Source: Rebecca billardiae RCC1528
Lineage: Eukaryota; Protista; Haptophyta
DNA: 64,000 bases
Direction of reading: 5' to 3'
Assembly (NCBI GenBank): GCA_965240325.2
Contig: OZ251226.1
Coordinates: 1,240,001 to 1,304,000 of the forward strand
How positions within the stretch are numbered: the first letter of the stretch is position 1; each line of letters starts with the position of its first letter. Positions 17,556 to 59,460 of the stretch are shown here, in pieces. The notes below the pieces were generated by a model. It saw nothing but the letters and a program-made list of their open reading frames with translations, was not told where the DNA came from and did no database searches. Made by a program: the position numbers and the translations under genes.

Positions 17556-17699
17556 CATATAGCTAGCAGTATTGTCGTCGTGTGCCACAACCGCGTAGTA
17601 GTCACAGTACTGAACTGTAAATAGTAGTAGATGAATGCTGGCGCACGGCTGCGCACGCGCACGCGGCGGCATGATAATGGCGCGCTGTGGATTTTGTAC

Positions 17700-18188
17700 G
17701 GGAAAACCCCGGAAGTCCGACGAGGACCGACCGAGCAACCAGAACTCCGACAAACCTCCGCATCTCAGCACGGCGATTTCCGGACTGGCACCCCCGCCAG
17801 TTTTCCGACGGCCAGAAGCTTCGGGAGCGAGCAAATGGCGCCGCTCGCCCGCAACGCGGAAGATACCGCTCGCGGCGAACCGGCGCGAACGCCCGCCTTG
17901 TATTCGGGCGGAGTACCCTAATGAGCGGGGGTGGGTACTTTCGTATTGCGCGCAGCCTGACGCCCACCCGCGACGAAACGACGCCGTCGACTCCTCCCGC
18001 CCGGACCGCCGCCGGAACGTTGCTCGTCAATTAGTTAGAGAAATGCGACGCCGGGGGGCGCGCCGCAAAACTTGCTCCCGAGCTCGCCACGAGGGACGAT
18101 CGATGCCTCGCACGACGTTAAGGGGGTACGCCTGCCACGCGCGCGGGCGTCGTGCGCGCGCCGCGTGGTCGCGCGCGGCGCATCGCGC
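17700..18188 (+). repeat. left terminal inverted repeat (~489 bp)
   Basis: Reverse complement of 34969-35463, apart from a few substitutions, a 6-bp indel and a ~14-bp divergent patch near 18097-18110. Confidence 0.95.
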
Positions 18189-21100
18189 GCGCGTGTGTCT
18201 TCGTTCGCGCGCGCGGCGTGCGCTCGCGCATGTCGTCACGCCGTGCGTTCTGCGTCGTTGCGCGGCGTCGTGCCCGCGTGCCGCGCGCAGGCCGCCGCCG
18301 CCTGCGGGGACGACTCCGACTGCGACGAGCTTCGCGAACGGGGCTGCTGTGGACGTGGTGTACGAGCAGGGTGCACCGGCAGTCCGTGCTGTGGTCGCGG
18401 CGCTTGGGGTCGGCGCACACGGGCGAGTGCAGACGTACGTCCTCCGGGCTGCCGAGGGAGTGTCTGCTCATGCGTGGGCTGCGGTCCCTGGCGACACCGT
18501 CGGTGCGTCCGCGGATGGAACAGTCGAGGGCGCAGGCTCGTTGAAGAGGGTGCCAGCGGCGCACGTGCGTGCGCCGCCCGCCGGCGAGCAGTGCGCCGAG
18601 CAGGGGCAGGGCGCCGAGCAGGGCGCCGAGCAGGGCGCCCTGCTCGGCGCCCTGCTCGGCGCCGAGCCGGGCGCCGAGCAGGGCAAGCAGGCCGCCGAGC
18701 AGGGCGCCGAGCCGGGCGCCGAGCCGGGCGCCGAGCAGGGCGCCGAGCAGGGCGCCCAGCCGGGCGCCGGGCAGGGCGCCGGGCAGGGCAAGCAGGCCGC
18801 CGAGCAGGGCGCCGAGCCGGGCGCCGAGCAGGGCGCCGAGCAGGGCAAGCAGGGCGCCCAGCCGGGCGCCGGGCCGGGCGCCGAGCCGGGCGCCGAGCAG
18901 GGCAAGCAGGCCGCCGAGCAGGGCGCCGAGCCGGGCGCCGAGCAGGGCGCCGAGCAGGGCGCCCAGCCGGGCGCCGGGCAGGGCGCCGGGCCGGGCGCCG
19001 GGCCGGGCGCCGAGCAGGGCAAGCAGGGCGCCGAGCAGGGCGCCGAGCAGGGCGCCGAGCAGGGCGCCCAGCCGGGCGCCGGGCATGGCAAGCAGGCCGC
19101 CGAGCAGGGCACCGAGCCGGGCGCCGAGCAGGGCGCCGAGCAGGGCGCCCAGCCGGGCGCCGAGCAGGGCGCCGAGCAGGGCGCCGACGGCCGGCCGGCC
19201 CGCCACGGCAGCACGCGCGTGGGCGGCGGCAGCTACGCCGCCCAGGGCATCCAGCAGGAGGCTGCGGGGCAGCGCGGCGCGCAGGGGGCGGCTCACCACA
19301 ACGGGCGCGGCGGCGTGCGGACGCGGGCCATGCGCCGCCAGCCGCCACGTGCGCCACCCGCCGAAGCGCTGCCCGGCGTCACCTCGGCGCCGCCGGCGCC
19401 GCCGTCGGCGCCGACGGCGGTCGCAGGCGTCACGGCGGCGCCGGCGGCGCCGCCTGCGGCCGCCGGCGGCCCCGCGACAAGCGACGAACGCGCCGAGCCG
19501 CCACGCGCACCCGTCGCAACGCTGGCGCCGGCGCCGGCGCCGCCGCCGGCGCCGACGGCGGTCGCCGGCGTCACGGCGGCGCCGGCGGCGCCGCCTTCGG
19601 CCGCCGGCGGCCCCGCGACAAGCGACGAACGCGCCGAGCCGCCACGCGCACCCGTCGAAACGCTGGCGGGTGCCACCGGCGTCACCGCGGCGGCGCCGGC
19701 GCCGCCGCCTGCGGCCGCCGGCGGCCCCGCGACGCGCGCCGAACGCGCCGAGCCGCCACGCGCACCCGCCGAGGCGCCGGCGGCTGCCACCGGCGTCACC
19801 GCGGCGGCGCCGGCGCCGCCGGCGCCGGCTGCGGCCGCCGACGGCCCCGCGGGCGTCAACTCAGATGACTCCGGTGGTGCTGCCTCGGGCGAGGTGGCAC
19901 GGGCGGCGACGGCGTCGACCGCGACGCGCGCCGAACGCGCCGAGCCGCCACGCGCACCCGCCGAGGCGCCGGCGGCTGCCACCGGCGTCACCGCGGCGGC
20001 GCCGGCGCCGCCGGCGCCGGCTGCGGCCGCCGACGGCCCAGCGGGCGTCAACTCAGATGACTCCGGTGGTGCTGCCTCGGGCGAGGTGGCACGGGCGGCG
20101 ACGGCGTCGATGGGTGGAGCGGCGGCTGGCGCAGCGGGGTCGCACTCCCATGCACCACAGCAGGCGCCCGCCGCCGCGCAACCCGGCGGTGGCGGCCACG
20201 CGGACGACGGCGGCGGCGTCTACGGCAGCGGCGACGGCGGCTCACGCGAGCTGTTCGCGATGAGCGATGTCTTGCAGCACGTGGATCATTTCTTCAGCGG
20301 CATCTTCGGGAAACGCCGGAGGTTCGGCGGAGACACGCCCGCCGCGCCGGCGCAGGCGCACGCGCACGTGCTGGTGCGCCCCAGCGCGGTGGCGGATGCG
20401 GACGCGCGGACGACGAAGCACGGGCCGCAACCGAACAACGGCCGATTGGTGCCGGCCATCCTCAGGTTCAACCGCGCGTTCGCGTCACGGCATCTCGGCG
20501 GCGGCGGCGGCACGGTCCGCGTGGTGAACGTGGTGTGCGATGCCACGAACAACAAGCACTTCGGCGTGCTCACGGATGCCGACGCTGTGCGCGAGCTGTG
20601 CGCCTCGGGCGCCTTGTACACGCGCAGCGAGGTGGACGATGCGGTGCGCGAGTTCTACGCCGGCGCCGCCGCGAGCGTCGGCGGCTCTGTCTCTGAGCTC
20701 GCCCTGCGCGCAGCAGGCGAGCACTTCGGTGTGCACGGCCCGTTGCCCTACGTCCTCGACGCGGACGTGCGAGTCGCCTTAGCGGACGCTGAGGCCGACG
20801 ACGATGGCGTCGCAGGCGGCGACGCGCCCTGGGTTCACCGGGCGCTTGCGTTGCCCTCGATGCGGCGCTCGGGACAGGCGGTGTTCGGCCTCCCCGCCGT
20901 GGTTGCACAGGCGCCCTCCTGGTGCGCGCTTGTGCCCACGCCGCTGCGGGCGCCCGCTGAGCAGGGGACGTCGCCTTTGCTGCACGCCGCCGTGGCCGTG
21001 GTGGACTACCGGTCCGTGGACACCGACGACACCGACGAGTCGGAGCCCGTCGTCGGCGCGCACGCGTACGCCATCCGCTTCGAGAAGGGCTGGCGCCTCC

Positions 21101-23808
21101 TCACCTTCGCCACGCGGCCGCCCAGTGGTGCGGCGGGCGCGATGACGGCTGCGACGTGCACGAACCTCACGGTCGGAGCCTTCGCCGCCGCCGTCAGCCG
21201 GCGTGAGGTTGCTGCGTGCGAGCTGCAGTCGCTGCAGTCAGCGCCGCGGGCCATTGCGCCCCCCGTCCAGCACGCCGCCCCCGCGCTCCACGACCCGCCG
21301 CCCAGCCCGGACGAGACGGACGCGTTGCCGCCCCGCCCGCGCCGGGACGTGGTCCCGACGTCCACGGACGTGCTCATGGGCGCCTCCGCGGTGTGCAGCG
21401 CGCTCGGCATCGGGCCATGCCATTGGGCGCCCGATGGCGACCCGCCCGGGCTCATGACGAACGCCGCGGCCATCGCGGAGGCGGCGCTCACGTACGTGCA
21501 GTCGAACTACGACGTGATTGGGGGCACGGCGGCGTCGGCGGACCTGCTGCACACGCTCCACCAGATCATGGTCGCCGGCCGCCCGCAGCGCTCGTTTGAC
21601 AGGCCTCTCCCCCGGCCGGGCGGTGGGACGCGCGTGCGCGTCGCAGGCGTCGTCGGCGAGCTGCCCGTCCATGAACAAGAGCTGATGCTCGCCTCGAAGC
21701 ACACGTGCGTCGCGGCGGCCATCGCGTGCGCCTCGGCGCTCGTGCTGCGCGTCAAGGCGGCACACCTGCGATACGACGCCCTCGCCGACGTCAGCGTGGG
21801 CGATGGTGCGTCCTTCGAGGCGGCGGACTACCTCACCAAGGTGCGCATCGTCAGCGCACGGCTCGTCGCGCCCGAGCGGAAGAAGCGGCTCACCTTCGAG
21901 CTCCTCGCCGTCTCCGAGGATAACGCCGGTGCTTACGACCGCGTGCTTAACGCCGACACGAGCTCGCGGGCACTCCACCGGGACGAGGTGCTCGAGTTCA
22001 CCTACGTGCCTTCGAAGACGCGCTCGTGGAAGTCGACGGAGGCGCTGTCAACGCACAGCCGCGCGGCGGCCGGCGACGACGCCGACGCCGGCAACTTCGG
22101 CACGCTGTTCTTCGTCCCGCACATGCGCGACCCCGTGAAGGCAGCCGCCCTGGCGCGCCCGCCGCCTGCCGGGACGCCACCTGCCGCGCCGCCCGTGGGT
22201 GCGATTGTGGACTTTCGCCCCTTGTGCATCAGCGTGTGGGCTGACATCGTCCCGTTCTGCCAGGATCGGCTCTGGACGCACCCGGCGGACCCAGTCACCG
22301 GCAAAAGCAGCGGCGTGGACGCGCCGAAGATGTACGCCGCCGCGCTCCACAGGCGCGCGCCCTCGCTGGCGCGGCACGTACAGGCGGCGCCAGCGCGCAA
22401 GCGTCGCCTGAACGAACGCGGCGCCGACGCGGGCGGCGCGGGCGGCGGCGCCGGTGGGCGTGTGGTGGCGCGCCGGCCGGTCGGCGACCCGGGCCGCGTC
22501 GCCGTCACACGGCCATCCGCCGTCGCGCGCGCACCCGGGCCACCCGAACAGGCGACGCGCATGTGCACCGAGCTCGCTGCGGCCCACGCCCAGCTCGCTG
22601 AGATGGTGCACGGCATCCCCAACGCAATGGCACACGCGATCGGACAACTCGCTGCGAACGACGCCAAGCGCCAGAAGGACTACGAGGCCTGGCGCGCGGC
22701 GGACGAGGATCGGCGCCGGCAGGAGCGCGCGGCGGACGAGGCCTGGCGCCAGCAGGAGCGCGCGGAGGCGGCGCGCCGACGCGACGAGGATCGCGCGGCC
22801 GCAATGAAACGTGACGAGATCGCGAGCGCGATGGTGGCGTCTATGCAGGCGTTGACGCAGTTCATGATGGACCGCAGCGCAGGTGGCGCACAGCCCGGCC
22901 CGCACGCGTCGGCGCACGCGGCGTGCGTCCAGCTGCCAACAGGCGAAGCACCGCACGGCGCGCACGCCCCGGCTGCGGGCCCGTCGGTGAGCGCTGCGTC
23001 CGCTGCGCCCACGTCGCGCGCACCCACGGCACGGCGTGGCGCGCCGCCGCCGGTCGCATTCGGCCAGCGCGCGCGGCGCCGAGTGCCGCCCCCTGACTCG
23101 CGTGTGCCCGCCAGGCCGCTGCACTGTCGCTCCGTGCGCCGGCCGCGCAGGCCGACGAAGCCCCCGCGGGCCAGCCCCCGCCGGCCGCGCAGTAGACGCC
23201 GACCCACAAGGGCGCGTCCTGACGTGCCCACGCGCCGCCCACAGGTGCGCGCACACACCACATCGGGCGGCGCCAGCCGTGCGCACGCCGAGCGGCGTGT
23301 ACGCGCAGCCCTGGCTCAGTCGCGCCCGACCGCCCCCGTGCGCGCGCGCGCGTCGCGGTGGCGTGCACAGGCTGCGCGCCACCCGGGGCGGCCACGCGGG
23401 TGGCCGCCACCGCTGGCAGCATCTGGCCACGAGCTCGGCACCCGGGGTGCCGGCGGAGTGGCTCGTCGGAATCGCCGTGGCCTGAGCCCGATTCTCCGAG
23501 CACACGGCCACAGGCACCCCCCCGGCCAGCGCCTCTGCGCCACTCGCAGTGACGGCGCCACAAGGGCCTACGGCGGGGCCCGCCGAGAAGGTCTTAGCGA
23601 AGGTCTTAGCGGGATGCAAGCAGCGCCACGCGCGACAACACTGATACACGCCGCCGGGGGCCCACACTGTGCCGGCCCGTGCTATGTCGTCGTCAGCTCG
23701 GACGCAGGCCGGCCGGCCGGTGCCGAGTCGGCGCCTGTCGTTCTGTTAGCTGGCACCTGGCGTGCTCAGGCGGCGTGGTGCGCACTCAACGTACTCCTGC
23801 AAGGGTGA
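18103..23808 (+). CDS. transposon accessory gene (mudrB-position): possible Tudor/Agenet-like N-terminus, GAEQ and Pro/Ala repeats, unknown globular regions, coiled coil
   Basis: >6-kb open frame. Proposed ATG 18103 with in-frame intron 18126-18290 (GTACGC...CAG). NLS-like GKRRRF and RKRR; coiled coil ~22660-22860. The 3' end after ~23030 is uncertain (may be spliced). Confidence 0.65.
18594..19186 (+). repeat. coding minisatellite, 12-bp unit GGCGCCGAGCAG ([12 protein letters not shown] variants), ~50 units
   Basis: Read directly from sequence. Confidence 0.9.
19410..20109 (+). repeat. coding internal duplications (2 x ~120 bp and 2 x ~190 bp with 192-bp period)
   Basis: [15 protein letters not shown]...[12 protein letters not shown] occurs twice; [10 protein letters not shown]...[10 protein letters not shown] occurs at 19729 and 19921. 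Confidence 0.85.
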
Positions 23809-26800
23809 TGTAGCTCGCATGAAGTGCGCCAGACGCCCCTCGTTGTTGTCGCGCGCCGAACGCGCCTCCAGGGGCGCCGTCGCCGACACCACCGCGCCGA
23901 AGTGGCAACGGCCGTCGTACACCACGGCCATCCACGTCGTGCCCAACTGCGTGACGTCCAGACGCTGCAAGGCGCGCCGCGTGCGCTCGTCACGCAGGCG
24001 CAGGTGCGCATGCGTGCTCACTGCGACGCTGCCCTTGCGCCCGCCGTCGTCAGTCCGCCGCCAGCGAAGGCCCGGCCGCGTCTGCACGGGGTAGAACCAG
24101 ACGTTGTCGGTGAACGCGCGCCACGCCGCCTCCTCCGGCGTAGCCCCGCCGCGCAGCTCAAGGACCACCAGCGGCAGGCCCGTGGCGCGCGCCGTCGCGA
24201 CGTGCGAGCCCCACGCCGACCACGCACCAGCGCGCGCCGCATGCGCGCCAGCGCCGTCGCCCGTGTACCGGGCGCCGCGCGCGTACGCGCGCGCCGCTGC
24301 TCCCAGCGTCCGCACGCCTCCAGTATGTCGCAGTGGCAGTGGCAGCACCTCCTGCCAGTCCTCGTCCTGCACTTCGAGTCCTTGGCCGGTGCGGGCCCGG
24401 GGGATGGATGCTGGCTTGACGCCAAGCATGCCGAGCGCGCTTGCCGCCGACGCAGTGGCCGACGCCGTGCCGAGCGTCTCGCCCGGTCCGTGCTCGTCCT
24501 CCCACGACGCGATGTACGAGCACACGCCGTCGCGCAGCGTCTGCGCGCGCGCGTTGGCGGCGGGCAGGTCGGCCCGCACGCCACGCGTGTCGTGCGCGAG
24601 CCACGCGTGAAAGTAGCAGTCGCCATCGCCGGGAACGTCCTGCACGCTCGTGCCGCCGCCGAAGAGCTCGCGGATGGCCGCGGCGACGTTGCCGTCGCCA
24701 TCCACGCCGCCGGGTGCTCCGGTCTGTGCACCAGCCCGCGCCTCGGGCGGCAACGCCGGCGGCAGGGGCAGCACGGGGAAGCCCAGGCGCTCGAGCAGGA
24801 CCGCGGCGTCGTCCACCGGCGCGTGCACGTGTGCGGCGGCCGCCGGAGCCACCGCAGCCGGCGCAGCCCCGTGCCCGGCGGGCGCCGGCGCCGCCGCACC
24901 CGCGTCCACGGTGGCGTCCGTCGCCGCCGCGGCGCGCGGCGCGGCTGCGCCGCGTGGCGCGGCATCACCCGCCCGCTCCGCCGTCACGTCAGCGGCGGTC
25001 TCGCCCAAGGCCAGGCGCAGCCCCAAGCCCACGTCGCACCGCCATGCCCCGTCGGAGCCGTCGAGAGGGACCACCTCGGTGCCGAACGCGCTCGGGTCCA
25101 GCGCATCCACCTCGCACCCGCGCCGCCTGGACGCCAGCCTCACGTGCGCGTCCGCAGCCGGCTGGAACGCACTCCAGCGCGACGCCGGCAACACCCCGTG
25201 CGCGCGCGGGGTGGCCTGCGGCGCAACCACTGCGTAGAACTGCCGGCGAGGACACACGTTGCGCACGATGGCCACCCAGCCGGTGCCCATCGCCCCGACG
25301 TCGAGCGTGCGCAGGACGCGTGCGTGCGTCTCGCGTCCCAGGCTCAGGCGCGCTTCGCACAGCGGACGTGCGTCCGCGTGCGCGGCGCCTGCGTCGGGCG
25401 TGTCGGCGCGCCGGCGCTTCGCGCCGGCGCCCCCGCGAACGCGTGCCGCCGCCGGCGCCGGCGGCACGCGCACTGCCGCCGGAGGATACCACCGCACGTG
25501 CTCACGCATGGCGACGCCGTGCACGTCGCGACTTCGGCGTGCGCCGGCCATGTCGAAGACGAGGAGGTGCACGCCGGCGGCGCGAGCGACTGCCGCGTAC
25601 CACTCAGGGCCATCGCACGTGTTGCCCCGGCTGCTGACGTACCCGTCGCACGTGTACTCCGCCGCTCGCACTGCCAGCGTCACTGCGTCGTCCAGATCGC
25701 GCACGCGCTGGCCGGGGGTGTGCCACCACGACGACGAGTCGTCGGGGGCCACCATGCGCAGAGCCCGCAAACGCGCCTGCCCAGCTTCGTCGCCACCTGC
25801 GCTCTCCGGGGGAAGTGCGCGCACGTCAGCGTCGCACAAGCCGATGAAGCGCGCCTGCGCTCGCAGGTCCTCTGCCGACTCGGCCGGGCCCAGCGCGCCA
25901 CCCCAGCCGACGGAGTGCTCGGTGGGCGTGGCATGCGCGTGCGCGGCCAGCCACGACGCGGCCGCCGCGCGCAGGCGCCGCGCGCAGCACGTCCACCACA
26001 GGGCCTCAAGCGTGCTGGGCGGACGCGCCCGCGCGTGCGCGTGCGCGAGCACCGCGTGCAGCACGTCGTCACCGTCGGCTGGCACGGGCAACGGCTGTGC
26101 GGCGCCCGCGCCCCAGAGGTCGTCGAGCACTGCCTGGGCGCAGCAGAGCCGTAATCGGGCGAATTCGGCGTCGTGGTCGTCTGCGCCGGCGGCGGCGTCG
26201 GCGGCGTGGAACAGGCGCACCGGCGCGTGGCGGTCATCGCCCGCGGCGCGCGCTCCAGCGTCGCGCACCGGCAGACCAGTGCGCGCCAAGTGGGCGACCG
26301 CGTCGTCCGCGGTGGCGACGGCTGTGTCGTCCGCGGCACCAGACGTGCCACGCGCCGTCCCCAGCAGGTCGGCGCCTGCGCGCGTTGGGCCCGGCGTCGG
26401 CACCGCCCGCGCCGCCGACGATGGCCCCGCCGTGGACGCGCGGGCGCCCGCCGCCTGGCGCGAAGCCGGCGGCAGGCGCCCATCCGCGGCCGCACCGCCC
26501 GCGTCGTCGGCGGCGGCCGCAGTCCGAGGGCGCTTGGGCGCGCACGGCGCAGACGCGGCCCCCGCGCCCGCGCGGGAGGTGCCAGCCGCGGCGCCCGCCT
26601 GGACTGCGGCGCCTGCGCCCGCGCCGCCGCCGCCAGCCAGGACGTCCGCCAGGCCCGCCGCCGCCGCCGCGACGTCGTGTGCGCCTGCGTGCGCCCACAC
26701 GTGGGAGGCCGCGTTCGGAGCGGCGCCGCCCGAGCCCCTCGCGCCGCCACTGCCCTCGGCGGGCACGGCGGGCGACGCGTGCGCGCGCGCCAGCTCGGCG

Positions 26801-29800
26801 GGGGCGGCGGCGGCGCGCGCAAACTGTGCCAGCACCTTGCCCGTCGTCGCGCTGGACGCGCCGAATGCGTCACCGGCCGTCTCGCTGAGCGTGCGCCACG
26901 GTGCTGACAGGCCGCGACTGCACATGAACATGGCTGCCCTGCCCCGACCGATGCCAGGTATGCGCTGCAACGCCGCGAGCACTGCGGCGCTGTCGTCAGC
27001 GAGGCGCGCGTACGCCGACTCGGACTCCGCCGCCTCCGCCGGTGGCTCTGCCGCGCCCGCGCGCGCCCGAGGGACTCGCGCACCCGGTGGCGGTGGCGCG
27101 TGGGCGCCGGGCCACGGGGGGCGGAAGGGATGCTCTGTCGCCGCCAGCGGTACTGTGTCGCCCGTGGCCGGCAGCGGCTCCGCGGCGTGCGCGCGCGCGC
27201 GCGCGGCGGGCGTCGTGCCGGCGTCCGCGCCACTGCGCGGGCCCGTCGTGCCCTCAGGCGGTGCGGCCGGCCGCTGCGTGGCGGCGTTTGGCATCGGTGC
27301 CGTCGCGAAGCCCATGCGTACGCCGGTGCCGCCAAGTGCCTGCGAGGCGATCGCGCGCGCGCAGTGCCGGCGCGGGCCGCCGCGCGCGCCCGCGCCCGCC
27401 GCGGCGGCGCCGTCGCGCGTCTGGGCGGCCGCCGGCTGCGTGCGCCCGGGCGCGGGCGCCGCCGCGCCGCGGCCCCCGCGGCCGCCTGCGCGGCCCCCGC
27501 GCGCGCCTGCGGTGCGCGCGGGGTCGCCGCGCGCGGCCCCACCGCCGTGCTGTCCGCGCATACGGTGGTATGGCACGTCCTCCGGCCTCGCGCCGCGCGG
27601 CCCGTCGGGCGCCGCCGCCTCGCCCGCCGCGGCTGCGCGCGCTTCGCGCAGGCGCTTCCACGCCCCCGCGACGAGCAGGAAGTAGCAGCACGTGCACATG
27701 TACAGCCCGCTGTCCAGCGCGCCGAGGTGCCACACATACTTGCACTGCGCGGGCGAGTGGATGAAGCAGGCGCAGCCCTGGCACGCCAGTCGGGGGTCGA
27801 TCGGCGGCGAGTCCGCCGGCCACGCCGCGCTGAGGTCCGCGGCCTCGGGGTCGAAACACGCGCAGCAGCGCAGTTGCGCGGCGGCGGTCGTGCCGGCCGT
27901 GTACGTGGCAAAGTGGCGACGTCGCTGGTTCGCAACCACACCCTCGCGGAGCGGGCCGGCCACGCGCACGAGCACGTTAGTGTCGTCGAGCACGTGCGTG
28001 TGCGCGATGCCGTACAGGTGCTCCGGCAGCCCCTCGAGCACACGCGCGAGCTCGTCGCGGTGCGCTTCGCGCACGCGCCGGGCGAAGTCGCCGTCCGGGG
28101 CTTGCTCCCTCAAGGGGCGCACGTACGACGCCGCGGATTTGCCCAACTGCACGCGCGGCGCGCGCGCGCGCGGTGCGCGCGGGTGGCGCGCCCCGGCGCG
28201 GCCCTCCCAGAACGCCAGCCGTCGCGCCGAGGACGCGGGCCTGCCCACGCGCGCGGGCACCGCTGGCATGGCCACGTACTTTTCGAGCAGGGCGCGCTTG
28301 GCGAGAGCGGGCAGCAGCAGAGCCGCAATGGCGTCCTCCAGGCGCTGGGGCGGTGTGATGACGTCGAGCTTGGTGATGGCCACGACGCGCCCGAGCGTGT
28401 CCACCCGCGTGTCGTTGGCGTCGCGCTCGACCCGAAGGCCCACCTGCGCGAACCACGTCTCGCAGCGCAGGTCCTGGGGCAAGCACGTGCCCATGGCACG
28501 GCCGACGGAGGTCGCCACGCGGCAGAAGTGCATGCACGGCAGGCGCTTGCGGCGCAGCAACGCGCAGCACCGGAACTCGTCGAGGTACACGTGGCGCGGC
28601 GCCGAGCCGTCCGTGGTGTTGAGCATGCGCAGGGCACCTGCGTGCGGCCCGTCGAGGACACGGTGCACTTCCACCTGAGAGAGCGTGCGCGCCGTGCTCA
28701 CCTGCTGGCGCACGTATTCCAGGTGCCGTGGCGGCAACCCGTGCACCTCATCATCGGCGTCGGGCTTCAGGGCGTGGCGCACGGCGACGCTGCGGTGCGT
28801 CGCGTAGAGGCGAAAGAGGTTGTCGTGCAGGTCGAGCAGCATCCACACCGGGCCCTGCGCCTTGCGCACCGGCAGCAGCCAGTGCATGAAGGACTCCGCC
28901 GGCGCGGACGTCACGTAGCCGCGCAGGGACACCGGCGCGAAGCACGGGAAGAGCTCCTCGCGGGGGATGACGTCGAGGATGCGCTTGGCCGACTCTGGCA
29001 TCTCCACCCAGGCGGCCTCCCACACCTCCTCGGTCAACGCGTCCACGCACGCGTCGAACACGCGCAGGATGGTGGGCACCTCGTTCGCCGAGTGTGCGTA
29101 GCCCGTGATGAAGGTCTGGCGCTTGTGGAACGTGCACAGGAAGAGGTGCCTGCGCGGGCACAGCAGCTTCCACGCGCCGCGCAGGCCCTTCTGGCCGTCC
29201 GAGATGGTGACGCCGTTGGGGTCGTCCCACACAGCCGCCCCGCCGAGGTGCTGCATGAGGTATCCGACGTGCGCGCACCACGAGTCCAGGCACTCCACGT
29301 CGACGATGTACGACACGCACAAGACGAACAGCTGCCGGTTGGCGTTCACGGCCAGCGTGACGAAGAGCATGCCTGCGTCGCGCGCGTGCGTGCGCGCGGG
29401 CAGGTCAGACGGGCGGGCGCTGAGGCGGCACGGACGCACGCGGCGTCGCGAGGGCGTGCCCGGGTGCGGCGGGCGCGCGCACCCGCGCGCTTCGCGCCAC
29501 CGCTGGCGGGGCGGTGCAGGAAGCACGCGTCGCTGAACGCGGCCGTGTTGCCCTTCGCGTGAAAGTGCTCGCGGTAAAGCGCCTTGGCCTGCTTGGGCAC
29601 GTAGTGGAAGCCACCCACTGCCTTCTTGCCGCGCACGTCAGCCAGCGCCTTCTGCACCTCCGCCGCGTCGGGGTTGAAGGCCGCGCGCTGCGCGCCCGCC
29701 GGCAGCCCCTGCTGCACCTCGTCGTGCACGCGGCCGAACATGGCCAGCAGCGCGTCCTCGACCGAGTTCTCGTGGAAGATGATGGGCGCGACCTCGTTGC

Positions 29801-32800
29801 CCTCCTGCGACAGCGACGCGCACACGGCCACGAGGTCGCGCGACATGGCCGTGTCGTCCCCGTAGATCTCGGCGCGCGCTTCTTTGTGCGCTCGCGCGAT
29901 GAGCGATTCACCCATGGGGAGCTCTGCGTCCAGCTGGCGCGCGACCTCTCGTGCTTGCTGCGGGCCGTAGCACAGCTGCGCGTGCGTGGTCCCGCGCCGG
30001 GCCAAGCGCGCCTTCCAGTCCTCGACGATCGCCCGCCCGAGCTCGTGTTGGGAGTACGGCGTCGTGCGCACGCCCGGCTGGTTGGTCGGGCGCGGCAGCG
30101 AGCCGATGGGGTGTTCCTCGGACCCCTTGCCCATGCGCAGGTTGCGGCACATGGAGCCGTGCGCGACCGAGCGTTGCACGGCCCACGGCGGCGCGCCAAA
30201 CGTGTCCACGTACTTCGACGGGCCCACCACCACCACGGACGGGCACCCGGGCGTGGGGCATCCGATCGTCAGCTTGGCGCGGTCGACGCGCCGCGTCGGC
30301 GGCATGGCCCCCCGGTGCAGCGCGCACTCCGAGGCGTGCGTGAGCGCGTCGGCGAGGCGCGGGTACACCTGGCGCACCATCGGGGGCTCGAGCAGGGTGG
30401 CGTCCGCCTTCACCTGGGAGTACGGGCGCGGCGCCCGCAAGCCCATTTTCCTCCACAGTGCCAGGGGCCGGAGCTCGAGGCGGTGCGCTGCCGCCGACGT
30501 GCTCGCCGAGGTGCTCGACGGCGCGGAGTAGCGGAAGTACCCGGCGTCACCGCCGTGGTGCAGCGACTCCGGCGCAACAAGCCGGGCGCCGGCCTGGCCG
30601 GCGCGGGGCTCGGCGGGACCGGTGGAGGGCGGCTGCGCGCGAGCGACGATGGGTGGACACGGCATGAGGGCAGCCAGCGGGTCGCGCGCGCGAGCGGCGT
30701 CGCTGTCGGCGGACTCGTCCGCCTGCAGTGCCGCCTGCGCCGCGCGCGCGCGGGCGTCCGCGCAGTCGTCGTCCGCGATGCCCTCCTCCCAGTCGCGCAC
30801 GTCGATGGCGGCACTGGCGGGATCGGCGTCCGTGACGAGCGGCTCGCCGCGGGCGTCGGACTCGCCGACGCGCATCGTCGGCCAGTCCGCGCTCAGGGCG
30901 AACAGCGGCGCGTTGCCGCGGGCGGCCGCCGTCGTGTGCGTCCTATGGCCCACGGACGCGTCGACGAGGGGCACTCCACCGCGCGCCCATGCGGGCGCCG
31001 ACTTCTCCGTCGCCAACGCGTCGGCAAGGTGGCCACCGAGGTGGGCACGCTGGCCGGCGTGCAGGGCCAGGGCGAGGTCCCCGCCGGACAAGAGGCCACC
31101 TGCGTGCGGCAGCGCAGGGAGGGCCCTCAGCCGCGCGTCGTCGTCGTCATTGCCGCCGTCGCCACCGGAGGCGCCGCGCGGCTGCGGCGGCGCGCGCGAG
31201 GCGCAGCCGGGCGGCTGCGCGATCACCGCGCGCGCGCTGCTGCTGTCGAGGGGCGGCCCCGCCGGGTGGAGTGGCGGGCGCGCCGTCGCGGCGCACACAG
31301 CAGCGCCGGGCACCGTCACCGCGACGCAGGGCACGGCGTCGCCCGCAGCGCAGGGTGCGCCCGGCGCTGGCGTTGCCACGCGAGCGGGCGAAGAGTGCCC
31401 ATCGCCAGGCCGCGGCGACGCGGGCTCGTGCGCGCCCGGCGCGTCCGAGCTCGAGCTTTGGCGGGCGCCGGTGTGCCGCAGCGGGGCGGACGCTGCGTCG
31501 GGGCGACGCACGGCCGTGGGCGCGCGCGGCCTGACAGCCGGGTCGTCAACGCCATCGGCGCGTGGGGGCCGCGCGCCCTCGTCAAAGGGGGCGCCCACGT
31601 GCGCGCCCGTGCCGTGCGCGGCCGCGGCGGTGGGCGCGCGCCCACCGCCGTCGGCGTGAGGCGCGGGGTGGCCGCCCGCAAGCCCCACGACGTGGGGCAC
31701 GGCAGGCGCCGCTGCGCGCTCATGTGCGAGCTGCGCGCCGTCGGCAGCGCACACGGGCAGCGCCAGCTGCAGCGCCGACTGCGCCCAGGCCCGCTGCTCG
31801 TGGTCCGACGGCGCCTGCTGGCCGTGCGCCGCGGTCGGCAGGTCGACCACCAGGCGGGAGACGTACTCGTGGTGCGCAGGCGAGCCGAGCCGGAAGCGGG
31901 CGTCAGCGCCAGCGCGCGTGGGCTCAGCCCCCCAGCGCAGCCTGGTCTCAAACGAGTGCTGGAGCCCGCGCTCGAGGGCGGGCACGAGCCGATACGGCGT
32001 GGGAGGCGGGTCGGAGCGCGCCGCGCACGGCGTGGCGGCGGGGCGAGGCGCGCTCGGCGGCGGCGTGAACGAAGCGCGGAATGTGTCCGCGAGGCCCCGC
32101 CCCCCGAATGAGAACACAGCCTTCAGGACGAGCGCGTCCGCCGCACCCTGACGCGTAGGCCTCTTGCGCGAGGACGACGGCACGGACCCAGAGGACGCGG
32201 CGCGCGCACTGGGGGCCGAGCGGTGATGCCACATGGCGGGGAAGATGTGCACTGCACCTGCGCTTTCCTGCAGGGCAACGTCGCCGTGCAGCGGCACGGC
32301 GTCGGCGCGCGCACCGGGGGGGCGCGCGCCGACCGTCTGCAGCGGGAAGGGATTGGTGGGCACACTTTGCGGCAAGTGCAAGAGGACCACTGCCGTCCAC
32401 AGATGGTCCTCGTCGGTCGTGCCGTCGACGTGCCACCCGTACGTCGTGACGTCGCCGTCGTCGCACGTGCCGCGGCCCCCGTCGGGCGGACGCATCGGCC
32501 GCCCGAAGACATGCCAGGCCGTGAGGTCGAGCGCGTCGAGGCCGCGGACACCGTCAGAGGCGTCGCCGCGGAACAACGAGCTCACGACGCCCTTCAGCGC
32601 CGCCACCACGCGCTCAAAGGCGCGGCACCCCAGCACCGAGCGCGCAGAGGAGCCGTGGTCGCCCACCCCCCAGCGCCGCTGCGCGGCCGCCTCGCCGCCC
32701 GCGTCCGCGGACTGGTACGCGTGCACCGTGCGCAGGAGGCCGCCACCCTCATCCAGCAAGGGCATGGACGCATCGCCGTCCCCGCCGAGGCCTGCGTGCT

Positions 32801-34637
32801 GCAGCACGTACTCGCGCAACGGGCCAACCAGCACGCCCATGTCCATGTCCAAACGCTGCGGTGCCGCAGCGGCGGCACCAAACGCGGCCTGCAGCGCGCG
32901 CCCAACCGCGGCGTTATGCGCGAGCATGTCGTCGAGGCTGGGCGCGGGCGCCGCCGCAGGCGTCGGCGCCAGCGCGTCGCCCAGCGGCGGCTCGCCTGCA
33001 GGCGGCAGCGCGCGCGGCACCACCACGGCGGAGGCAGGGCGCATCGCGCCCGACGCCGCGCTCGTCACCTCGTCGCGCCACGGCGCAGCGGCGCCCACGA
33101 CAGCGTGCGCACCGCACAGCGTCAGCACCAGCGTCACTGGCGGCTGCGAGACGGCCGCGCCGGCCACGAGGGCCTGCGCGAAGGTGGCGTCGAGCAAGGG
33201 GTGCAGACGCGCGCCCTCGCCGACGTGCACCAGCGCGGGCGCGAGCGGGATGACCACTGCCCACACGGTGCGCTCGGCGATGGTGGAGGCGGCCCGCAGC
33301 AACGGCCGCGCCAGCCACCCTTCGCGCAGCGAGCCGTCCTCGCACGCGGCCACAAAGGCCGCAAGACCGGCGTGGCCGTCGGCGACCACGGCAGCACGCA
33401 GCCTGACGGCGGCTGCGCGCACGGCGGCGTCACGTCCAGCGGCGGCGCCGGACGTGGCAGCGCGCGGCGCTCCATCTGCCGCCACCCCTTCGCCGGCCCC
33501 CACGACGGCCTGCGAGACGGCGCCGAGCCACGCCAAGCGGGCGCTCTCGAGTTCCGCACGCAGCTGCTGGTCGCGCCAGCGTGCCTGCTCAGCCGACGCG
33601 GGAACGAACGCGCGCGGCTGCGCCGGCACGGGCGCGCAGAGCGCGCGTACGGCAGCGTACGCCTGCGTGCGCAGCTCCGCCGCTCGCGCACGCAGCGCGT
33701 CCGCGCAGAGGCTGCTGCGGCCTGCTGGCCACGACGCCACGCGCTCGAAGGCGACGAACAGAGGCTCGGACTGGCCAGCGTCCGCGCCGAAGACGGCGCG
33801 CGCGTAGTACATCACCGCCTCGGACGGGCATGACAGCGGCGGGCACGGGGGGGGCGCGCCCGTCCAAGCGCCCGACGGCGCCGCCGCCGCCGCCGTCGTC
33901 GCCGGGAGCACGTCGTCGACGCCTCCGCCAGTCCCAGCACCTGGGCGGGCATCCGGACGGGGGGCGCACAACGCCGCCAGAGCCAGCTTCGTCCGGAACG
34001 GAGCGGCGGCCCAGGCCGCACGCACTGCCCACGCGCATGCGCCCTGCGCGTGCTCAGCGGCGCGTGCGTGCTGCCCTGGGGTCGGCGCCGAGGACGACGG
34101 CGACAGCGACTCCGCGCCACCCGAGCGGCGCGCGTGGGACGTGCCTGCGGGCGGCGGCGCCGGTTTCCCTCCGAGCGCCGCTGCGGACGCCGTCAGTCGC
34201 GCCGTCTCCGCGAAACTGCCCTCCTCCGCCAGAGCCCCGTCGGCGGAAGCACCACAGGCAGCGCGCACGGCGATCTGCGCGACGGCCCTGAACCAAAGGG
34301 CCGCCGCGCACACGCGCGCCACCGAGTCCGCGCGCTCACGCAGCGCGTCCGGGTGCGAAGCCAACAACTCCGCACACTCCACCACAGTGAGCAGCGCGTC
34401 GGCGCCGCTGCCACCCCATACGCGCGGCACTGTGACCTGCGCGGCGGCGGCGCCAAGGCCCACGTCGGTGCTGTGGACCACGCCGAGGGTGCACAGCACC
34501 AGACCAAAGGTGAACGTCCACGGGGCTGCTGCCGAGGAGAACTGCAGCGTGCACAACGCGTCGTCAGCCGCTGCGATCACCGCGTCCACGAGCAGCAGGT
34601 CGTCCTGACTGCTGGGGCCGGCGGACACATGCCGCAT
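23746..34637 (-). CDS. giant MULE transposase fusion (~3,593 aa): 2OG-Fe(II) oxygenase, Zn-binding DBD, DDE, SWIM, PHD, pseudo-OTU, OTU; join(complement(29483..34637),complement(23746..29372))
   Basis: Intron 29373-29482 joins AFSDACFL...AG|MLFVTLAVNANRQLF...VECLDSW. Also ISDGQKG, CTFH, TSAPAESF; SWIM-like FRCC...LPCMH; PHD-like CCAC...CQGCACFIH..QC...CTCC; VPGDGDCYFHA...CHFGAV; GWHVD...WHHRS; CPTPGCP...HGSMC. Confidence 0.85.
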
Positions 34638-34968
34638 GCCCGCCTGCGCGGTACGTGCCAGCACGTGCGGCGGAGAGGCAAACGCAGGCGCGCGCGAGCA
34701 CACACACGGGGCACATCGTCAGACAGGGGACGGGGGCGCATGGGAGTGGTGCGGTGTGCGCGCGCGCGGCGGCGCACGCCACCAACATCGCTGCCGACCA
34801 CACACACCCGCCCCGGCCCACCGCGACCTCGCACCATTCACGAATCACGAGTGCGACTTGCCTGCTCGTCGCGGCCGGCGACCGTCGACGCCTCAGACCG
34901 ACTCGGATGCGAGAAGGGGGAACTCCTGCGAGGGGAGGCCGCAGGGAACAAGAACGGTCGGTGCGTGT

Positions 34969-35463
34969 GCGCGATGCGCCGCGCGCGACCGCGCGGCGCG
35001 CGCACGACGCCCGCGCGCGTGGAAGGCGTACCCCCTTAACGTCGTGCTCACGCCCAGCCCTCCCTCGTGGCGAGCTCGGGAGCAAGTTTTGCGGCGCGCC
35101 CCCCGGCGTCGCATTTCTCTAACTAATTGACGAGCAACGTTCCGGCGGCGGTCCGGGCGGGAGGAGTCGACGGCGTCGTTTCGTCGCGGGTGGGCGTCAG
35201 GCTGCGCGCAATACGAAAGTACCCACCCCCGCTCATTAGGGTACTCCGCCCGGACCGCAATACAAGGCGGGCGTTCGCGCCGGTTCGCCGCGAGCGGTAT
35301 CTTCCGCGTTGCGGGCGAGCGGCGCCATTTGCTCGCTCCCGAAGCTTCTGGCCGTCGGAAAACTGGCGGGGGTGCCAGTCCGGAAATCGCCGTGCTGAGA
35401 TGCGGAGGTTTGTCGGAGTTCTGGTTGCTCGGTCGGTCCTCGTCGGACTTCCGGAGGATTCCC
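34969..35463 (-). repeat. right terminal inverted repeat (~495 bp)
   Basis: Inverted copy of 17700-18188. Confidence 0.95.
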
Positions 35464-35641
35464 ATTTTGTACTGACGATGGAATTAGGATCGAGGCAACG
35501 CCAAATAAAACAATAATAAGGGTCATCATCAAAAATGAAAAGGCCAAGAGCCGTCCGACCTGCCCGGCTCCGCCGCCGCCGCCCGGGCCGGAGCAGAGGG
35601 CCGTGCGCCCGCCCGTGCCGTGCCGGTGGGTGGACGACGCA

Positions 35642-38218
35642 ATGGACAGCGCCGCCCCGAAATCCTTCCTCTGCCCGATCGGCATGGAGATCATGCGCGA
35701 TCCCGTCGTTTGCGCCGACGGCTATAGCTACGAGCGCGTCCAGATCGAGCGGCGGCTCGCCACGCAGAACACAAGTCCGTACACTGGGGCTGAACTTTCC
35801 AGTACGATGCTCACTCCGAACCATGCGCTGCGCAACTCGATTGAGGAGTGGCTCACGGCGAACTTCAAGCTCGTGCCGCGCTCTGCGGTTGCCTTCGAAG
35901 AGGCTGCTTTGTCGCGCGTCTTCTTCAAGTCAGTCCACCGCGGCACCCTGCGGGGGCGCGCTGAGCCGATCGCGGTGCTGCGCATGCGCGCTGGCGGCTT
36001 CTGTGAGGAGGCGGCGGCAAAGCTCGTGCGACTCCGATACCATCCGAGCCTTGTGCGCTACCTCGGCCTGTGCACCGAAGGCCCCGAGCATCTGCTCCTC
36101 ACCGAGCTTGCGCCGCTCGGCTCTCTCAGCGCCTTCCTCGAGGCGCACGAGGCAGAGGTGACACTCGCGCACAAGCTGACGATGCTCGAGCAGATCTGCG
36201 CGGGCATGATCGCGCTCAGCTGCGCGGGGATAGTGCACTGCGACCTGGCGGCCCGCAACGTGCTCGTCTTTGCCTTCGATGCCGCCCACCCAGGGGCCAC
36301 CGTGGTGAAGATCGGCGACTTTGGCCTCGCTGTGGACCGCATGTACCAGACGCACGCGAAAGTGGCGGGGGAAGAGGTGCCTTTCCGGTGGATGCCACCC
36401 GAGGCGCTCCGCCGCCGCCGCTTCTCCGAGAAGTCGGATGTGTGGGCGTTTGGCGTGACGGCGTGGGAGCTGCTCACAGGCGGCGACGTGCCCTACGCGT
36501 TCATCGGCTCCAACGAGGCCGTCGCAGAGCGCGTCTGCAGTGGCGAGCGGCTCGCCCGCCCTGACAAGGTCCCGGACTCGCTGTGGGCGCTGCTCAAACG
36601 CTCGTGGGCGGCGATGCCGGCCGACCGGCCCATGTTTACGCAAGTTGCAGTCGCGCTGGCGGACATGCAGTGGCTGGCGACGCTTCCGCCCTGCAGCTCC
36701 AGCCACGAGTACTACATCCGCGTGAAGGATCTGTTAGGAAAAAGCTGGCCCGTGCAGGTCGCGTCCGAATGGCTCGTCGAAGACCTGAAGGCTGCGTTGC
36801 AAGAGAAGATGGGCGTCCCAGCTGACGAACAGAGACTGATCTTCGCGGGCAGGCAACTCCAAGACTTTCGCACGCTCGGCGAGTACGAGATCGCGAACGG
36901 CGCGGAGCTCCACCTATACCTGAGGCTGCGAGGCGGCTGCATCGCCTCGCCGCTTCCCGCGCTCTTTGGCGCACACACCGGTTCGCCCGGCCTCGAGTTC
37001 CTGACTGGCGCGCCCGGCTCGGCGGACGAAGCGCGCGCGCTGATCGCAGCCCTCGGCGGCTCCCTCGACGAGACTCCGCGCGTCCACCCCGCGGAGCTGC
37101 TGGACGCCGACGCGTGCGCGGCGCTCGTGCGGACTCTCGACGAGCACGCGGCCTCGGCCGCCCCGTCCGAGGCGGCAGACGTGCGTCTCTCGCTCACCGA
37201 CGCGGCGCTGGAGCGCCTCATTGGCGGCGCGGCGCTGGCGCGGCTCCGCGAGGTGTTTGGCGGGCCGTGGGACGCCGTCAAGCTCCGGCGCGCTGCCGCG
37301 GAGGGCCAGTGCGTCGCCTTTCACTGCGACTACTCCAAGCGCACGATGCAGGTGGCACTCAACGCAGAGGACGATTTCGGCGGTGGGAAGCTCACCTTTG
37401 CGACGGCCGACGGCTTTGTGCAGCCCGCGCGGCCGCGGGGCTCGGCCACGGCGCACGCCAACTCGCTGGTGCACGGTGTGAGCACGCTGACGCGCGGCGT
37501 GCGCTACGGTCTCTTCCTCTGCGACACCAAGGGGCCCGGCGTGGAGCTGGGCTACCTCAACGTCGCGGCGCGCGCGCAGCTGGGCTTCTTCGAGAGAGCG
37601 CTGGCGCTGCTCGACGCCGCCACCGACGCCGACCTGCTTCGGGCGGTGCGCGAGTATGCCGCTGTGCTCGCCGAGGGCGGCGCAGGTGGCGCGCCCACCA
37701 GCCTGGCTGTGGAGCTCGCATGGCGCACCCACCTGCTCAGCCCACTCCGGTACGCGGACGCGTGCGCAGTGCACCACGGTCGGCCTGTGGAGCACCAGCC
37801 GGCGCACGCGTACGCTGAGGACGCGCCGGTCGCTGCCGCCGGCTCTCCTGCCGCCGTGGCATTCAACGGATCGCTCGAGTGGCTCGGGCTCGACCTGGTC
37901 GCGGCGATGCGGCGGCAGCAGCGCTTCATGCGCGACGCTCTCGCGTGCCGCACAGCCTACGACTCGGAGGAGGCGATGGCCGCCGCCGTGGACGAGTACC
38001 GCGCCTTCCTCGACCACTTCCACCACTCTGCGCGCGAGCTCGTGCCCACGACGGTCGTCGACCTCGTGTGGCACACGCACATGCTCGACCCCCTCCGGTA
38101 CAGCCGCGAGACGCGCGCGCTCGCCGGCCGCTTCGTCAACCACGAGGATGATGTCGCGCCAGAGCGCCTGGCCAATACGGCGCGGCTCTGTTGGCCCCTC
38201 GAGCGCGCTGGGTCTTGA
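35642..38218 (+). CDS. multidomain protein: U-box, Tyr-kinase-like domain, ubiquitin-like (LRLRGG), 2OG-Fe(II) oxygenase, GRDP/DUF1399-like repeats
   Basis: [38 protein letters not shown]; [32 protein letters not shown]; [18 protein letters not shown]....[10 protein letters not shown]; FHCD...GGKL...HGVS...RY; [11 protein letters not shown] and [18 protein letters not shown]...HED. Confidence 0.85.
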
Positions 38219-41777: not shown

Positions 41778-42747
41778 GCGGGGTGCGGCCAAGCTCGGCC
41801 TGACGGCGGTGTGGTTGCCAGCGGTCGGGCGTCGTGTGAGTTTCACCGCAGGCCGCCCACCCTGCGCATTGACGACCATGCAAACGTCGCCGTACGCGCC
41901 CGATCCCGCACGAGTTGCCTTGCACAGTAAGCCGTATGGCCCATCGTGGACGCCCTTCGCAAGCTGTCGCCACTTCGCCGCGGTCTCCTAGTTTTCCGCT
42001 CCCGCAAGCCTTCAACTTTGCTTGAGACCCCTTCGACCGCTGAGAAACCCGCACAAATCCAGCGAACAGTGGCCGAGATGCTAACAAGATTGCAGCTAGG
42101 CCGAATCGGCATCATCGTGCCTTTCGGGATGACGATTGGCTCTTTCAACTTTGATTCCAAAGATTCATAAAGATGCTATTGAGATAATATGTCTCACTTT
42201 GTCCCGGGAGAAGTTGAGATGATCCATCGACCGACCAATGGGAAGGCAGAACCGCGGGCATCGCGAAAAAAAGCGTGAATTGTTCGCGGGTTGCGGCCCA
42301 GGCCCGACAAAAAACGCAGCGATTTGCCTGGCGGGGTGGGCAGTGCCGTTTGGGCGGGGGGCTGTCTTGCTGAGCTTGACTAGAAGGAGGCGGCCTGCGC
42401 CTGGGGGCTGCCAGTGGCCTGGCAGAGCCAGCAGGCGGCTGTGTGGCCTGCTGTCCAGTGTCTGGCTGTGTAAGGCTGCTTTGAGCTCCGTTACCAGTGT
42501 GACTGCCAGCAGCGGGGTCTGCCGCCATCTCAGGCCCCCCATGTCATACCATGTTTTCTATCGTCTACTAAGTGACTATGAATACGAACGCGGACGACGA
42601 TGTCGAGGCGGTACGACGACGCTGCCAGTAGTTGCTCAGTCAGCAAGCTGAGCAGTCACCACTGTCTTTGATGATGCACGAATAGTGAATACCGGTTACC
42701 GCACAAGGAGTGAGTCAACGAGAAACTGGTAGGAGTCACTCGGTGAC

Positions 42748-44670: not shown

Positions 44671-45096
44671 CGCCTGCCGCGGTAGCGCGAAGTGGGTTCT
44701 CGGCCGCCGCGTAAGCCTCCGTCGTTGGGTCGTGTCGCCGGTGCGCTTAGCTAGCGCCGACCGCGCGGGCCCGGGCGGGCGGCAGCGGCGGGTGCAGAAG
44801 TACTCCGGAGTCCGGAGCATCCGCCGGACGGGTGCCTGCGCCGGCCTGCCGGCACTGCACTGACTAATACTAGTTACTTGACCCCCATACTGAATACCAA
44901 GGGCGGTACCCATACCATGTTTTCTATCGTCTACTAAGTGACTATGAATACGAACGCGGACGACGATGTCGAGGCGGTACGACGCTGCCAGTAGTTGCTC
45001 AGTCAGCAAGCTGAGCAGTCACCACTGTCTTTGATGATGCACGAATACCGCACAAGGAGTGAGTCAACGAGAAACTGGTAGGAGTCACTCGGTGAC

Positions 45097-47748: not shown

Positions 47749-48183
47749 CGCCTGCCGCGGTAGCGCGAAGTGGGTTCTCGGCCGCCGCGCAGCCTCCGTC
47801 GTTGGCCGCACGGGCAGGCCAGGTTGCGCTTGGCTGGCGCCGACTCGGCGGGCGGCAGCGGCGGGTGTAGACTCCGGAGCATCGCCATCCGCCGGACGGG
47901 TGCTGCGCACTGCACTGACTAATACTACTAGTTACTTTACCCCCATACAATGTTTTCTATCGTCTACTAAGTGACTATGAATACGAACGCGGACGACGAT
48001 GTCTACGCGGTACGACGCTGCCAGTGGTTGCTCAAGTCAGCAAGCTGAGCAGTCCCCACGACTGTCTTCGATGATGCACGAATACCGCACGAGGATGCGC
48101 CACGATCAACACTCCGCTTGCTCTCTGACTCTGACCTGCCACCTGGTAGTCACTCGACTCACTCGTAGGAGTCACTCGGTGAC

Positions 48184-50106: not shown

Positions 50107-50456
50107 CGCCTCCCGCGCGCCGTGCAAGCTCCCGGGTGGGTCGTGTCCGGTCGCGCTTGGCGAGCACCGGAAGCGGGCGGGAGCGCGCGGCGTGCACACT
50201 CCGGAGCATCCGCCCGGGCCGGAGTCCGGACGGGTGCGCACCGTGCACTGACTATGTAGTATGTATCATCATAGTTACTTTGTAACTCCCCCAGGGCCAG
50301 GTATGGGGGTGCGATGTTTACTGTCGTCTACTACTAAGTGACTAGATGAATGCGAACACGAACGACGATGATGTCGAGGCGGTATGATGTTGCCAGTGGT
50401 TGCTCAGTCACACGATGATGCGCCACGATCAACACTCCGCTCCCTGACCAGTAGTG

Positions 50457-52379: not shown

Positions 52380-52801
52380 CGCCTGCTGCTGGGTAGCCTC
52401 CGTCGTCATTGGGTCGTGTTGATCCGCCGTGCGCGAGCGGGTGCACTACCAAGCGTGCACGTTGAGTGTATCGCTGGGCGCACTGACTTTCATCGCGCGT
52501 CGTCAACTTGCGATTACTACCGAGTCGTACTAACTGGTACAAAAGAGTGTATAGTAGTTCCTGTACAGTACAGCTTACTAAGAATAAGAGACGCACAAAG
52601 AGCTCTCAACGAGCAGTCAGCAGTCGTCTGATCTCAGTCCAGAGCGGCTGGAGGTCGCCTGACCAGGACGGTGAGGCTGAGCTGTGTCACTATACTGCCT
52701 GTGTGCGTTCAGACCGTCCGAAGACGTCTAGTTCGACTGAGTCCACTGCTAACTAGGTACGCCCGGCTCACAGCAAATCACAGCATGCAATGCGGCAACA
52801 C

Positions 52802-58672: not shown

Positions 58673-59460
58673 CATAGAGAAAACTTCGAATTGTGGGCAT
58701 TTTCGTAACTAACCGTACAGCGCCGAGATTACGCGGGCTCTGCGATCCATGGCGAGCTTGTGACTTGGGGCGGCGACTCGCGCAGCAGTTTGGCCGCTCG
58801 ATGTACGAGTTCGCGTCCGGACGAGTACGCGCGGCATGCAGGCTGCCGCCAGTGGGTACTGGCTACGAGTCCAAGCCCGCATGACCCTCACATCTCGAGT
58901 CTGCACCCTGCCGTTCGCTGTGTCAAAGCAGTCGCAACGCACAAGCGTCGTTGAGTGTCGATCGGCTGCGCGAGCGCGGTCTCGCCCCGCCCAACCCAAG
59001 TGTGTGCGAGTGAGCATGTGTCTTGAGCATGTGGCGTGCGTTGACGCCATCCGCGACGGCCGACATGGCCATGGAGCGCCCGCATCACTCGCCTGCACCG
59101 TGCCCTTCATAGCCTACGGGAAGCTCCGCAAATCTGTTGATTTTGCTCTTTTTTGCCCGTTGGAGTCATGTTCTTCGCTTGGTTCTTCGTGCACTGAAAA
59201 CCCTATTTTAAAGAATGAATTTTAGCGCGCGCGGGCGGCAGCGGAGCGCAACCAACCCGCGGAGTGTCCGAAGGAGATCTCCGAGACGCTAAATGTGAGC
59301 CAATTTTTGTCGCCTGCGCACCAACCTTGCGCCCGGGACCGACCATTAAAGTTGAGTGAGTCTCCCGTGAGTCTCCCGGCGCTGTACGGCTAACCCGACA
59401 TCTGCCGCGCGGATCCACTTTACACGATTAAGTAGAGTAGAAACTGTACAGCTTGAATTA

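Follow-up and report, generated by a model that had tools for sequence, protein, structure and literature searches.

The maize transposon MuDR is about 4.9 kb long. Its terminal inverted repeats (TIRs) serve as promoters for two convergent, spliced genes, and Mu elements insert preferentially into transcription units (PMC3440606). Among Mutator-like elements (MULEs) at large, TIRs reach about 500 bp, and an OTU domain (MuDR-6_HM, Cnidaria), a PHD finger (Rehavkus), a SET domain (Phytophthora MuDR) and an antisense second open reading frame (ORF) are listed for MULE or MULE-related groups, yeast Mutyl included, in a survey that does not mention haptophytes (PMC6446971). Ulp1 and VANC are found in MULEs of the VANDAL/Kaonashi type (PMC13317346), VANC being an anti-silencing factor of VANDAL-type MULEs (PMC13317346; PMC5735166). 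The grapevine elements Mutavine-1 (Mudravi1) and Mutavine-18 are tabulated at 17.7 and 16.2 kb (PMC2528002). Finally, fungal DNA transposons encoding TET/JBP carry a 2-oxoglutarate (2OG) dioxygenase, in a paper that brings up MuDR solely in connection with VANDAL and SET (PMC12730594). We describe here an element of 17.8 kb in a 64-kb stretch of the haptophyte Rebecca billardiae RCC1528 (contig OZ251226.1, positions 1,240,001–1,304,000; hereafter the window). With a probability of roughly 80%, it is an autonomous, recently mobile DNA transposon of the Mutator superfamily with a giant multi-module transposase of its own.

The element occupies positions 17700–35463 of the window (17,764 bp), and the assembly contains its left flank once. 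Its ends are as follows:

17691–17699, plus strand: left target-site duplication (TSD), 9 bp, the same 9-mer as on the right, abutting the element.
17700–18188, plus strand: left TIR, 489 bp, holding the predicted start codon of gene A (18103) and its first splice donor (18126).
34969–35463, minus strand: right TIR, 495 bp, with the splice donor of the left TIR and without a start codon; predicted 5′ untranslated exon.
35464–35472, plus strand: right TSD, 9 bp, the same 9-mer as on the left, abutting the element.

A first-pass annotation, made from the letters alone, had reported a perfect 9-bp TSD abutting near-identical TIRs of about 490 bp. Both are confirmed: the two 9-mers are identical, and the TIRs are 98% identical (477 matches, 10 mismatches, four small indels). 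The element thus has the 8–11-bp TSD directly outside its termini, and the long TIRs, that characterize Mutator elements and MULEs.

Searching the assembly (72 Mb, 41 contigs) with the TIR for copies with different TSDs, as the first-pass annotation had proposed, gave 20 strong matches, corresponding to nine full copies and fragments. The full copies measure 17,741–17,788 bp and are 99.4–99.5% identical to the window copy, which is the most divergent of them. They differ pairwise at 4–51 sites, and both transposase frames are open in all nine. Perfect 9-bp TSDs, of five different sequences, flank seven of the nine. Near-identical copies with varied TSDs support a recent spread of the family, so that this part of the earlier description of the element as young and probably active stands; its present activity we infer from near-identity and intact frames. 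For dating, the divergence between the TIRs is of no use, because what distinguishes left from right is fixed throughout the family. As for an empty site, the proteins encoded in the flanks are not on record, and the only public contig of this organism ends at 16529.

A serious minority possibility is that the element is real and now immobile, a recent burst or recombination having left a silent family whose copy pattern partly reflects assembly mis-joining. Two full copies, on C10 and C12, indeed have non-matching flanks, and a tenth copy, which shares variants with the window copy, is split at one base (3210/3211) between scaffold gaps, on C17 near 2022873 and on C22 near 474385. Moreover, 54 of 351 site pairs are incompatible by the four-gamete criterion, and one copy has a stop codon in gene A. 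Together, the flanks, the split copy and the incompatible site pairs point to recombination among copies or to mis-joins through a repeat of read length; the split copy is probably an assembly mis-join. At least 1.5 kb of the next copy's flank recurs in its C22 half. Against immobility, the seven copies with perfect TSDs have unrelated flanks, and some pairs differ at only 4–7 sites in 17.8 kb. A silent family would in any case be compatible with a recently mobile, autonomous transposon, the two readings disagreeing only on present activity.

The target sites are A+T-rich: every flanking 9-mer has at least seven A/T, compared with 1.7–2.0% of background 9-mers. One TSD is common to three loci (C5, C35 and one on C22) and corresponds to the last 9 bp of a high-copy repeat of about 102 bp, whose identical copies are very numerous (1,184 candidates at first look, of which 40 were scored). 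The repeat pieces at these loci measure 102, 65 and 49 bp, and the outer flanks differ. The head-to-head 102/49 arrangement of the C22 locus recurs at C1:4189433–4189584, a site at which the search detected no TIR, as would be expected if the insertions were independent. That three of ten insertions should fall on the same 9 bp greatly exceeds what chance predicts, even given A+T-rich targets (about 1e-8 to 5e-7 under rough assumptions), and suggests an insertion hot spot at the 3′ end of the repeat, which, if true, would be an unusual feature in a MULE. The three copies may instead share their descent; the copy tree does not resolve them. The repeat itself, also present in the window at 59458–59550, 59807–59851 and 52569–52600, is frequently truncated at its 5′ end, has a variable A+T-rich 3′ tail and forms head-to-head pairs; it looks like a short retroposed family, SINE- or Penelope-like. 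On the right flank of the C1 copy, the copy's own TSD is followed by the hot-spot 9-mer and then by a sequence whose first letters are three G and which may be where another element ends.

A sister giant MULE is present in three copies (C13:2394078–2407011, C24:1206416–1219340 and C27:990588–1003495). Characterized by coordinates and identities, it is collinear with the element at 33–67% identity and has the same layout, with a single OTU-like module; in the C24 copy, a stop codon interrupts the oxygenase segment. The minus-strand gene of the element consists of two ORFs in different frames, 34703–29346 (1785 codons) and 29526–23746 (1926 codons). A predicted intron at 29500–29373 (or 29482–29373) would join them in phase, so that about 3,590 codons would be read between the ATG at 34637 and the stop at 23746. 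The sister family lends this intron independent support: its near-identical copies tolerate non-triplet length changes at the same position (gaps of 188, 182 and 180 nt), the copy with the 180-nt gap reading through as one 3,254-aa frame. For all spliced models, lengths and phases were computed, and similarity and profile searches were made exon by exon. The catalytic part of the predicted product is arranged as follows:

29501–30503, minus strand: upstream part of the transposase, with a zinc-finger-like motif (30272–30144) and the first catalytic Asp (29531); 52–53% identity in the sister family.
29373–29500, minus strand: predicted phase-1 intron splitting the DDE domain, GT-AG, 128 nt (the alternative donor at 29482 gives 110 nt).
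28519–29372, minus strand: transposase core, downstream exon, with the second Asp (29199), CxxH (29136–29127), Glu (28896) and a SWIM finger (28581–28519); 67% identity in the sister family.

The first catalytic Asp thus lies at the end of the upstream ORF, and the second Asp, CxxH, Glu and SWIM finger in the downstream one. A CxxH motif after the second Asp is reportedly a criterion for MULE transposases according to Yuan and Wessler (2011), and the element has it, an assignment that depends on the predicted intron. Zinc fingers, recognized by motif alone, flank the catalytic domain (the SWIM spacing downstream, C-x4-C…H…C upstream); neither gave a Pfam match. The Pfam MULE profile is matched, below its curated cut-off, over positions 13–95 in both families (22.4 bits in the sister family), the first 12 positions lying across the predicted intron. 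Taken together, the D-D-CxxH-E motifs, the SWIM finger, the TSD, the TIRs and this weak match uphold the Mutator-like identity proposed in the first-pass annotation. The N-terminal half and the core appear to be under purifying selection, as judged from the ratio of nonsynonymous to synonymous polymorphism (pN/pS) among copies (0.22, p=0.003, 16 sites). Elsewhere in the genome, two MULE domains of a more conventional kind score over the Pfam cut-off (C23:328244–328534 and C10:1918801–1919085).

The remainder of the predicted polyprotein carries accessory modules:

32904–34637, minus strand: N-terminal 578 aa, start codon at 34637; 50% identity in the sister family.
32004–32903, minus strand: probable 2OG-Fe(II) oxygenase domain, with HxD (32432–32424), distal His and terminal Lys strand; 48–49% identity in the sister family.
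27679–27873, minus strand: PHD/RING-like Cys-His finger, by motif; region 67% conserved in the sister family.
25177–26226, minus strand: degenerate OTU-like duplicate without Cys and His; 31% identity to the OTU-like module (E=4e-9).
23857–24699, minus strand: OTU-like cysteine protease module, with Asp 24627, Cys 24618 and His 23904; 33% identity in the sister family.

The oxygenase-like segment has the HxD…H triad and the terminal basic residue of 2OG-Fe(II) oxygenases. In the ESM Atlas, it scored 0.93 to 2OG-FeII_Oxy_3 clusters and shared 154 of 256 features (170 being typical within a family; recognition 2737). It is probably a 2OG oxygenase of the prolyl-hydroxylase type, and BLAST detected no relation to the oxygenase-like part of a neighbouring host gene. 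In the OTU-like module, the Asp-x-x-Cys box, the Trp-Gly motif and the His box occur in the expected order, and the Cys box weakly matches the N-termini of viral L proteins (E=0.08); its degenerate duplicate was not detected in the sister family. The N-terminal 578 aa gave no Pfam or NCBIfam match, and the PHD-like finger none in Pfam or the PDB. A thiovarsolin match in the NCBIfam search was discarded as compositional noise.

On the plus strand, the ORF 17635–23808 starts outside the element, and the gene that it contains is predicted as follows:

18103–23195, plus strand: gene A, predicted 1,599 aa, with exons 18103–18125, 18291–22986 and 23115–23195.
18126–18290, plus strand: predicted intron 1, in frame, 165 nt, phase 2, with low third-position GC.
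18585–20110, plus strand: coding tandem repeats, a 12-nt unit repeated 52 times and duplications of 114, 141 and 192 nt; copy indels are multiples of 3.
22987–23114, plus strand: predicted intron 2, 128 nt, phase 0, with a branch-point-like motif.
23196–23745, no strand assigned: predicted 3′ untranslated/termination region that the two convergent genes share.

The last 600 nt or so of the plus-strand ORF are probably non-coding, because 2 nt are inserted at 23724 in seven of the nine copies (the sole frame-breaking exception, all other indels within ORFs being multiples of 3) and because splicing at a predicted pair of sites would bring the stop to 23195 instead of 23808. With that stop, the convergent genes end about 550 bp apart and do not overlap. 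The first-pass annotation had described two uninterrupted genes pointing inward from the TIRs and meeting at 23750–23810, in a MuDR-like layout; the inward, convergent orientation is correct, whereas the minus-strand gene is interrupted and the meeting point is not retained. At the other end of gene A, the TIRs differ in a short patch (18097–18109) that includes the start codon. Given the start codon on the left only and the common splice donor, the TIR leader would be coding on the left and untranslated on the right.

The sister family has a counterpart of gene A, convergent and 36–41% identical. Outside the genome, no relative was found (1.84 billion representatives, Pfam, NCBIfam, ESM Atlas), and the N-terminal segment had no match in the PDB. 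Tudor-, BAH- and YqaJ-like impressions found no support and are not claimed. As for homology to mudrB, which together with convergence defines the second gene of the MuDR clade, none was found, so that gene A, judged by its sequence, is mudrB-like in position only. An isolated gene A segment (99% identity) lies at C7:3187333–3189510 with no TIR or transposase match nearby, possibly a deletion derivative or a stray fragment.

Several results weigh against an autonomous Mutator transposon with these enzymatic modules. The Pfam MULE match (21.5 bits) falls below the 27.6 cut-off, with the first Asp lying across the intron, and no outside homolog of the core was found among 5.8 billion proteins and metagenome contigs. 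The 2OG segment had no match by HMMER, among hidden Markov models, in the PDB or in the genome-wide Pfam scan; the OTU scan with Pfam placed 14 host loci over the cut-off, the element's module not among them. For gene A and the OTU module, the AlphaFold models built from single sequences (predicted confidence, pLDDT, 33–35; OTU 33) are too poor for a fold search. Lastly, pN/pS among copies is 1.2 for the C-terminal tail and 1.7 for gene A, from small counts and without significance. In favour of the transposon, the ends, the TSDs, the copy family, the motifs and the layout conserved in the sister family are all observed.

By analogy with MuDR, each long TIR would act as an inward promoter. The right TIR would drive the spliced polyprotein of about 3,590 aa, whose DDE/SWIM core would bind the TIRs, excise the element and insert it at A+T-rich sites, the stagger being 9 nt. 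The left TIR would drive the partner of about 1,600 aa. The probable 2OG oxygenase, the PHD-like finger and the OTU-like protease would be the element's own long-retained accessories, whose purpose would most likely be to modify the proteins or the chromatin that surround the transposition complex, e.g. by stripping ubiquitin so as to protect the transposase or loosen silencing. A bolder version, which we consider rather doubtful, makes the element a self-contained counter-silencing and targeting machine: an active protein hydroxylase and a deubiquitinase would be fused to the transposase, and the partner would be VANC-like or a targeting factor steering insertions to the 3′ end of the 102-bp repeat.

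It is also distinctly unlikely that the minus strand is divided among several genes or yields spliced products that are much shorter, the 3,590-aa polyprotein being an overstatement. Long ORFs may read through hidden introns in a region of 75% GC, as intron 1 of gene A is predicted to be hidden in frame, the frames include long Ala/Gly/Pro-rich stretches, and no selection was seen on the C-terminal tail; yet conservation with the sister family is collinear, indels in the minus-strand ORFs are all multiples of 3, and the TIR search found no second promoter-bearing TIR-like sequence within the element.

A Pack-MULE-style element, i.e. a non-autonomous one or a transposase of normal size with captured host gene fragments, would account for the large size and for domains typical of host proteins, but it is very improbable and largely refuted already, since every segment searched matches only the family and its sister (plus the C7 fragment) with no host donor, the accessories are in frame with the core (within the single 3,254-aa frame in one sister copy) and 33–50% conserved between the two families, and the transposase frames are intact in nine of nine copies; what is left, ancient capture followed by retention, coincides with the origin implied by a transposon with its own multi-module transposase. 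The large cargo announced in the first-pass annotation is likewise abandoned: the internal protein segments searched match no host gene, and the interior is nearly all taken up by the two genes. The element is large because of its own transposase with added enzyme-like modules and its partner gene, not because of captured host genes.

The window copy sits 62 bp before an ATG that leads into a U-box/kinase/ubiquitin gene, in keeping with the preference of Mu for transcription units (PMC3440606). This gene (35603–38218) is a single ORF with a U-box, a Tyr-kinase-like domain, ubiquitin with the usual di-Gly end, a possible 2OG oxygenase and a GRDP-like domain. The host is indicated to be a haptophyte, probably of the Pavlovophyceae, by a bromodomain gene nearby, whose closest matches are a haptophyte entered in MMETSP under the label Chrysoculter (81%) and Pavlovales sp. 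CCMP2436 (71%). Four tandem ARM-repeat and BTB genes with differing numbers of 123-bp repeats occupy 42543–52631.

Convergent second genes, OTU, PHD and a size of 17.7 kb have each been published for MULEs. In a largely open literature, Repbase and Dfam lying outside the search, we came across no MULE described as carrying a 2OG oxygenase or this combination of modules, and paper searches gave no report of MULEs in this haptophyte lineage. None of MuDR-6_HM, Rehavkus, the SET-carrying Phytophthora MuDR and Mutyl is listed as combining such modules or carrying a 2OG oxygenase (PMC6446971). Like VANDAL/Kaonashi and the Ulp1-carrying plant MULEs, the element has an extra gene and a predicted cysteine protease for ubiquitin-like modifiers; unlike in VANDAL/Kaonashi, the protease is OTU-like rather than Ulp1 and is fused to the transposase, the TIRs are long, and anti-silencing is not indicated. 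Compared with fungal TET/JBP transposons, the probable oxygenase domain resembles prolyl-hydroxylase-type clusters, not TET/JBP, and is fused to the transposase. The size that the first-pass annotation had found unusual is so relative to maize MuDR and not relative to MULEs generally, since grapevine Mutavine-1 belongs to the same class; as far as its table goes, however, Mutavine has TIRs of 70 and 230–263 bp and no sign of a giant polyprotein (PMC2528002). With maize MuDR, the element shares long TIRs, convergent genes (spliced in maize, predicted to be so here), a 9-bp TSD and insertion near genes; it differs in being about 3.5 times longer, in its TIRs (about 490 versus about 215 bp) and in a gene A without detectable similarity to any known protein. 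It works like MuDR and is not filed in the MuDR clade. The element extends MULEs to a haptophyte lineage and reaches giant size through one huge multi-enzyme transposase instead of cargo. Because some ten intact copies are nearly identical, a sister family is conserved and the alga is of a culturable type, the roles of MULE second genes and appended proteases could be tested here.

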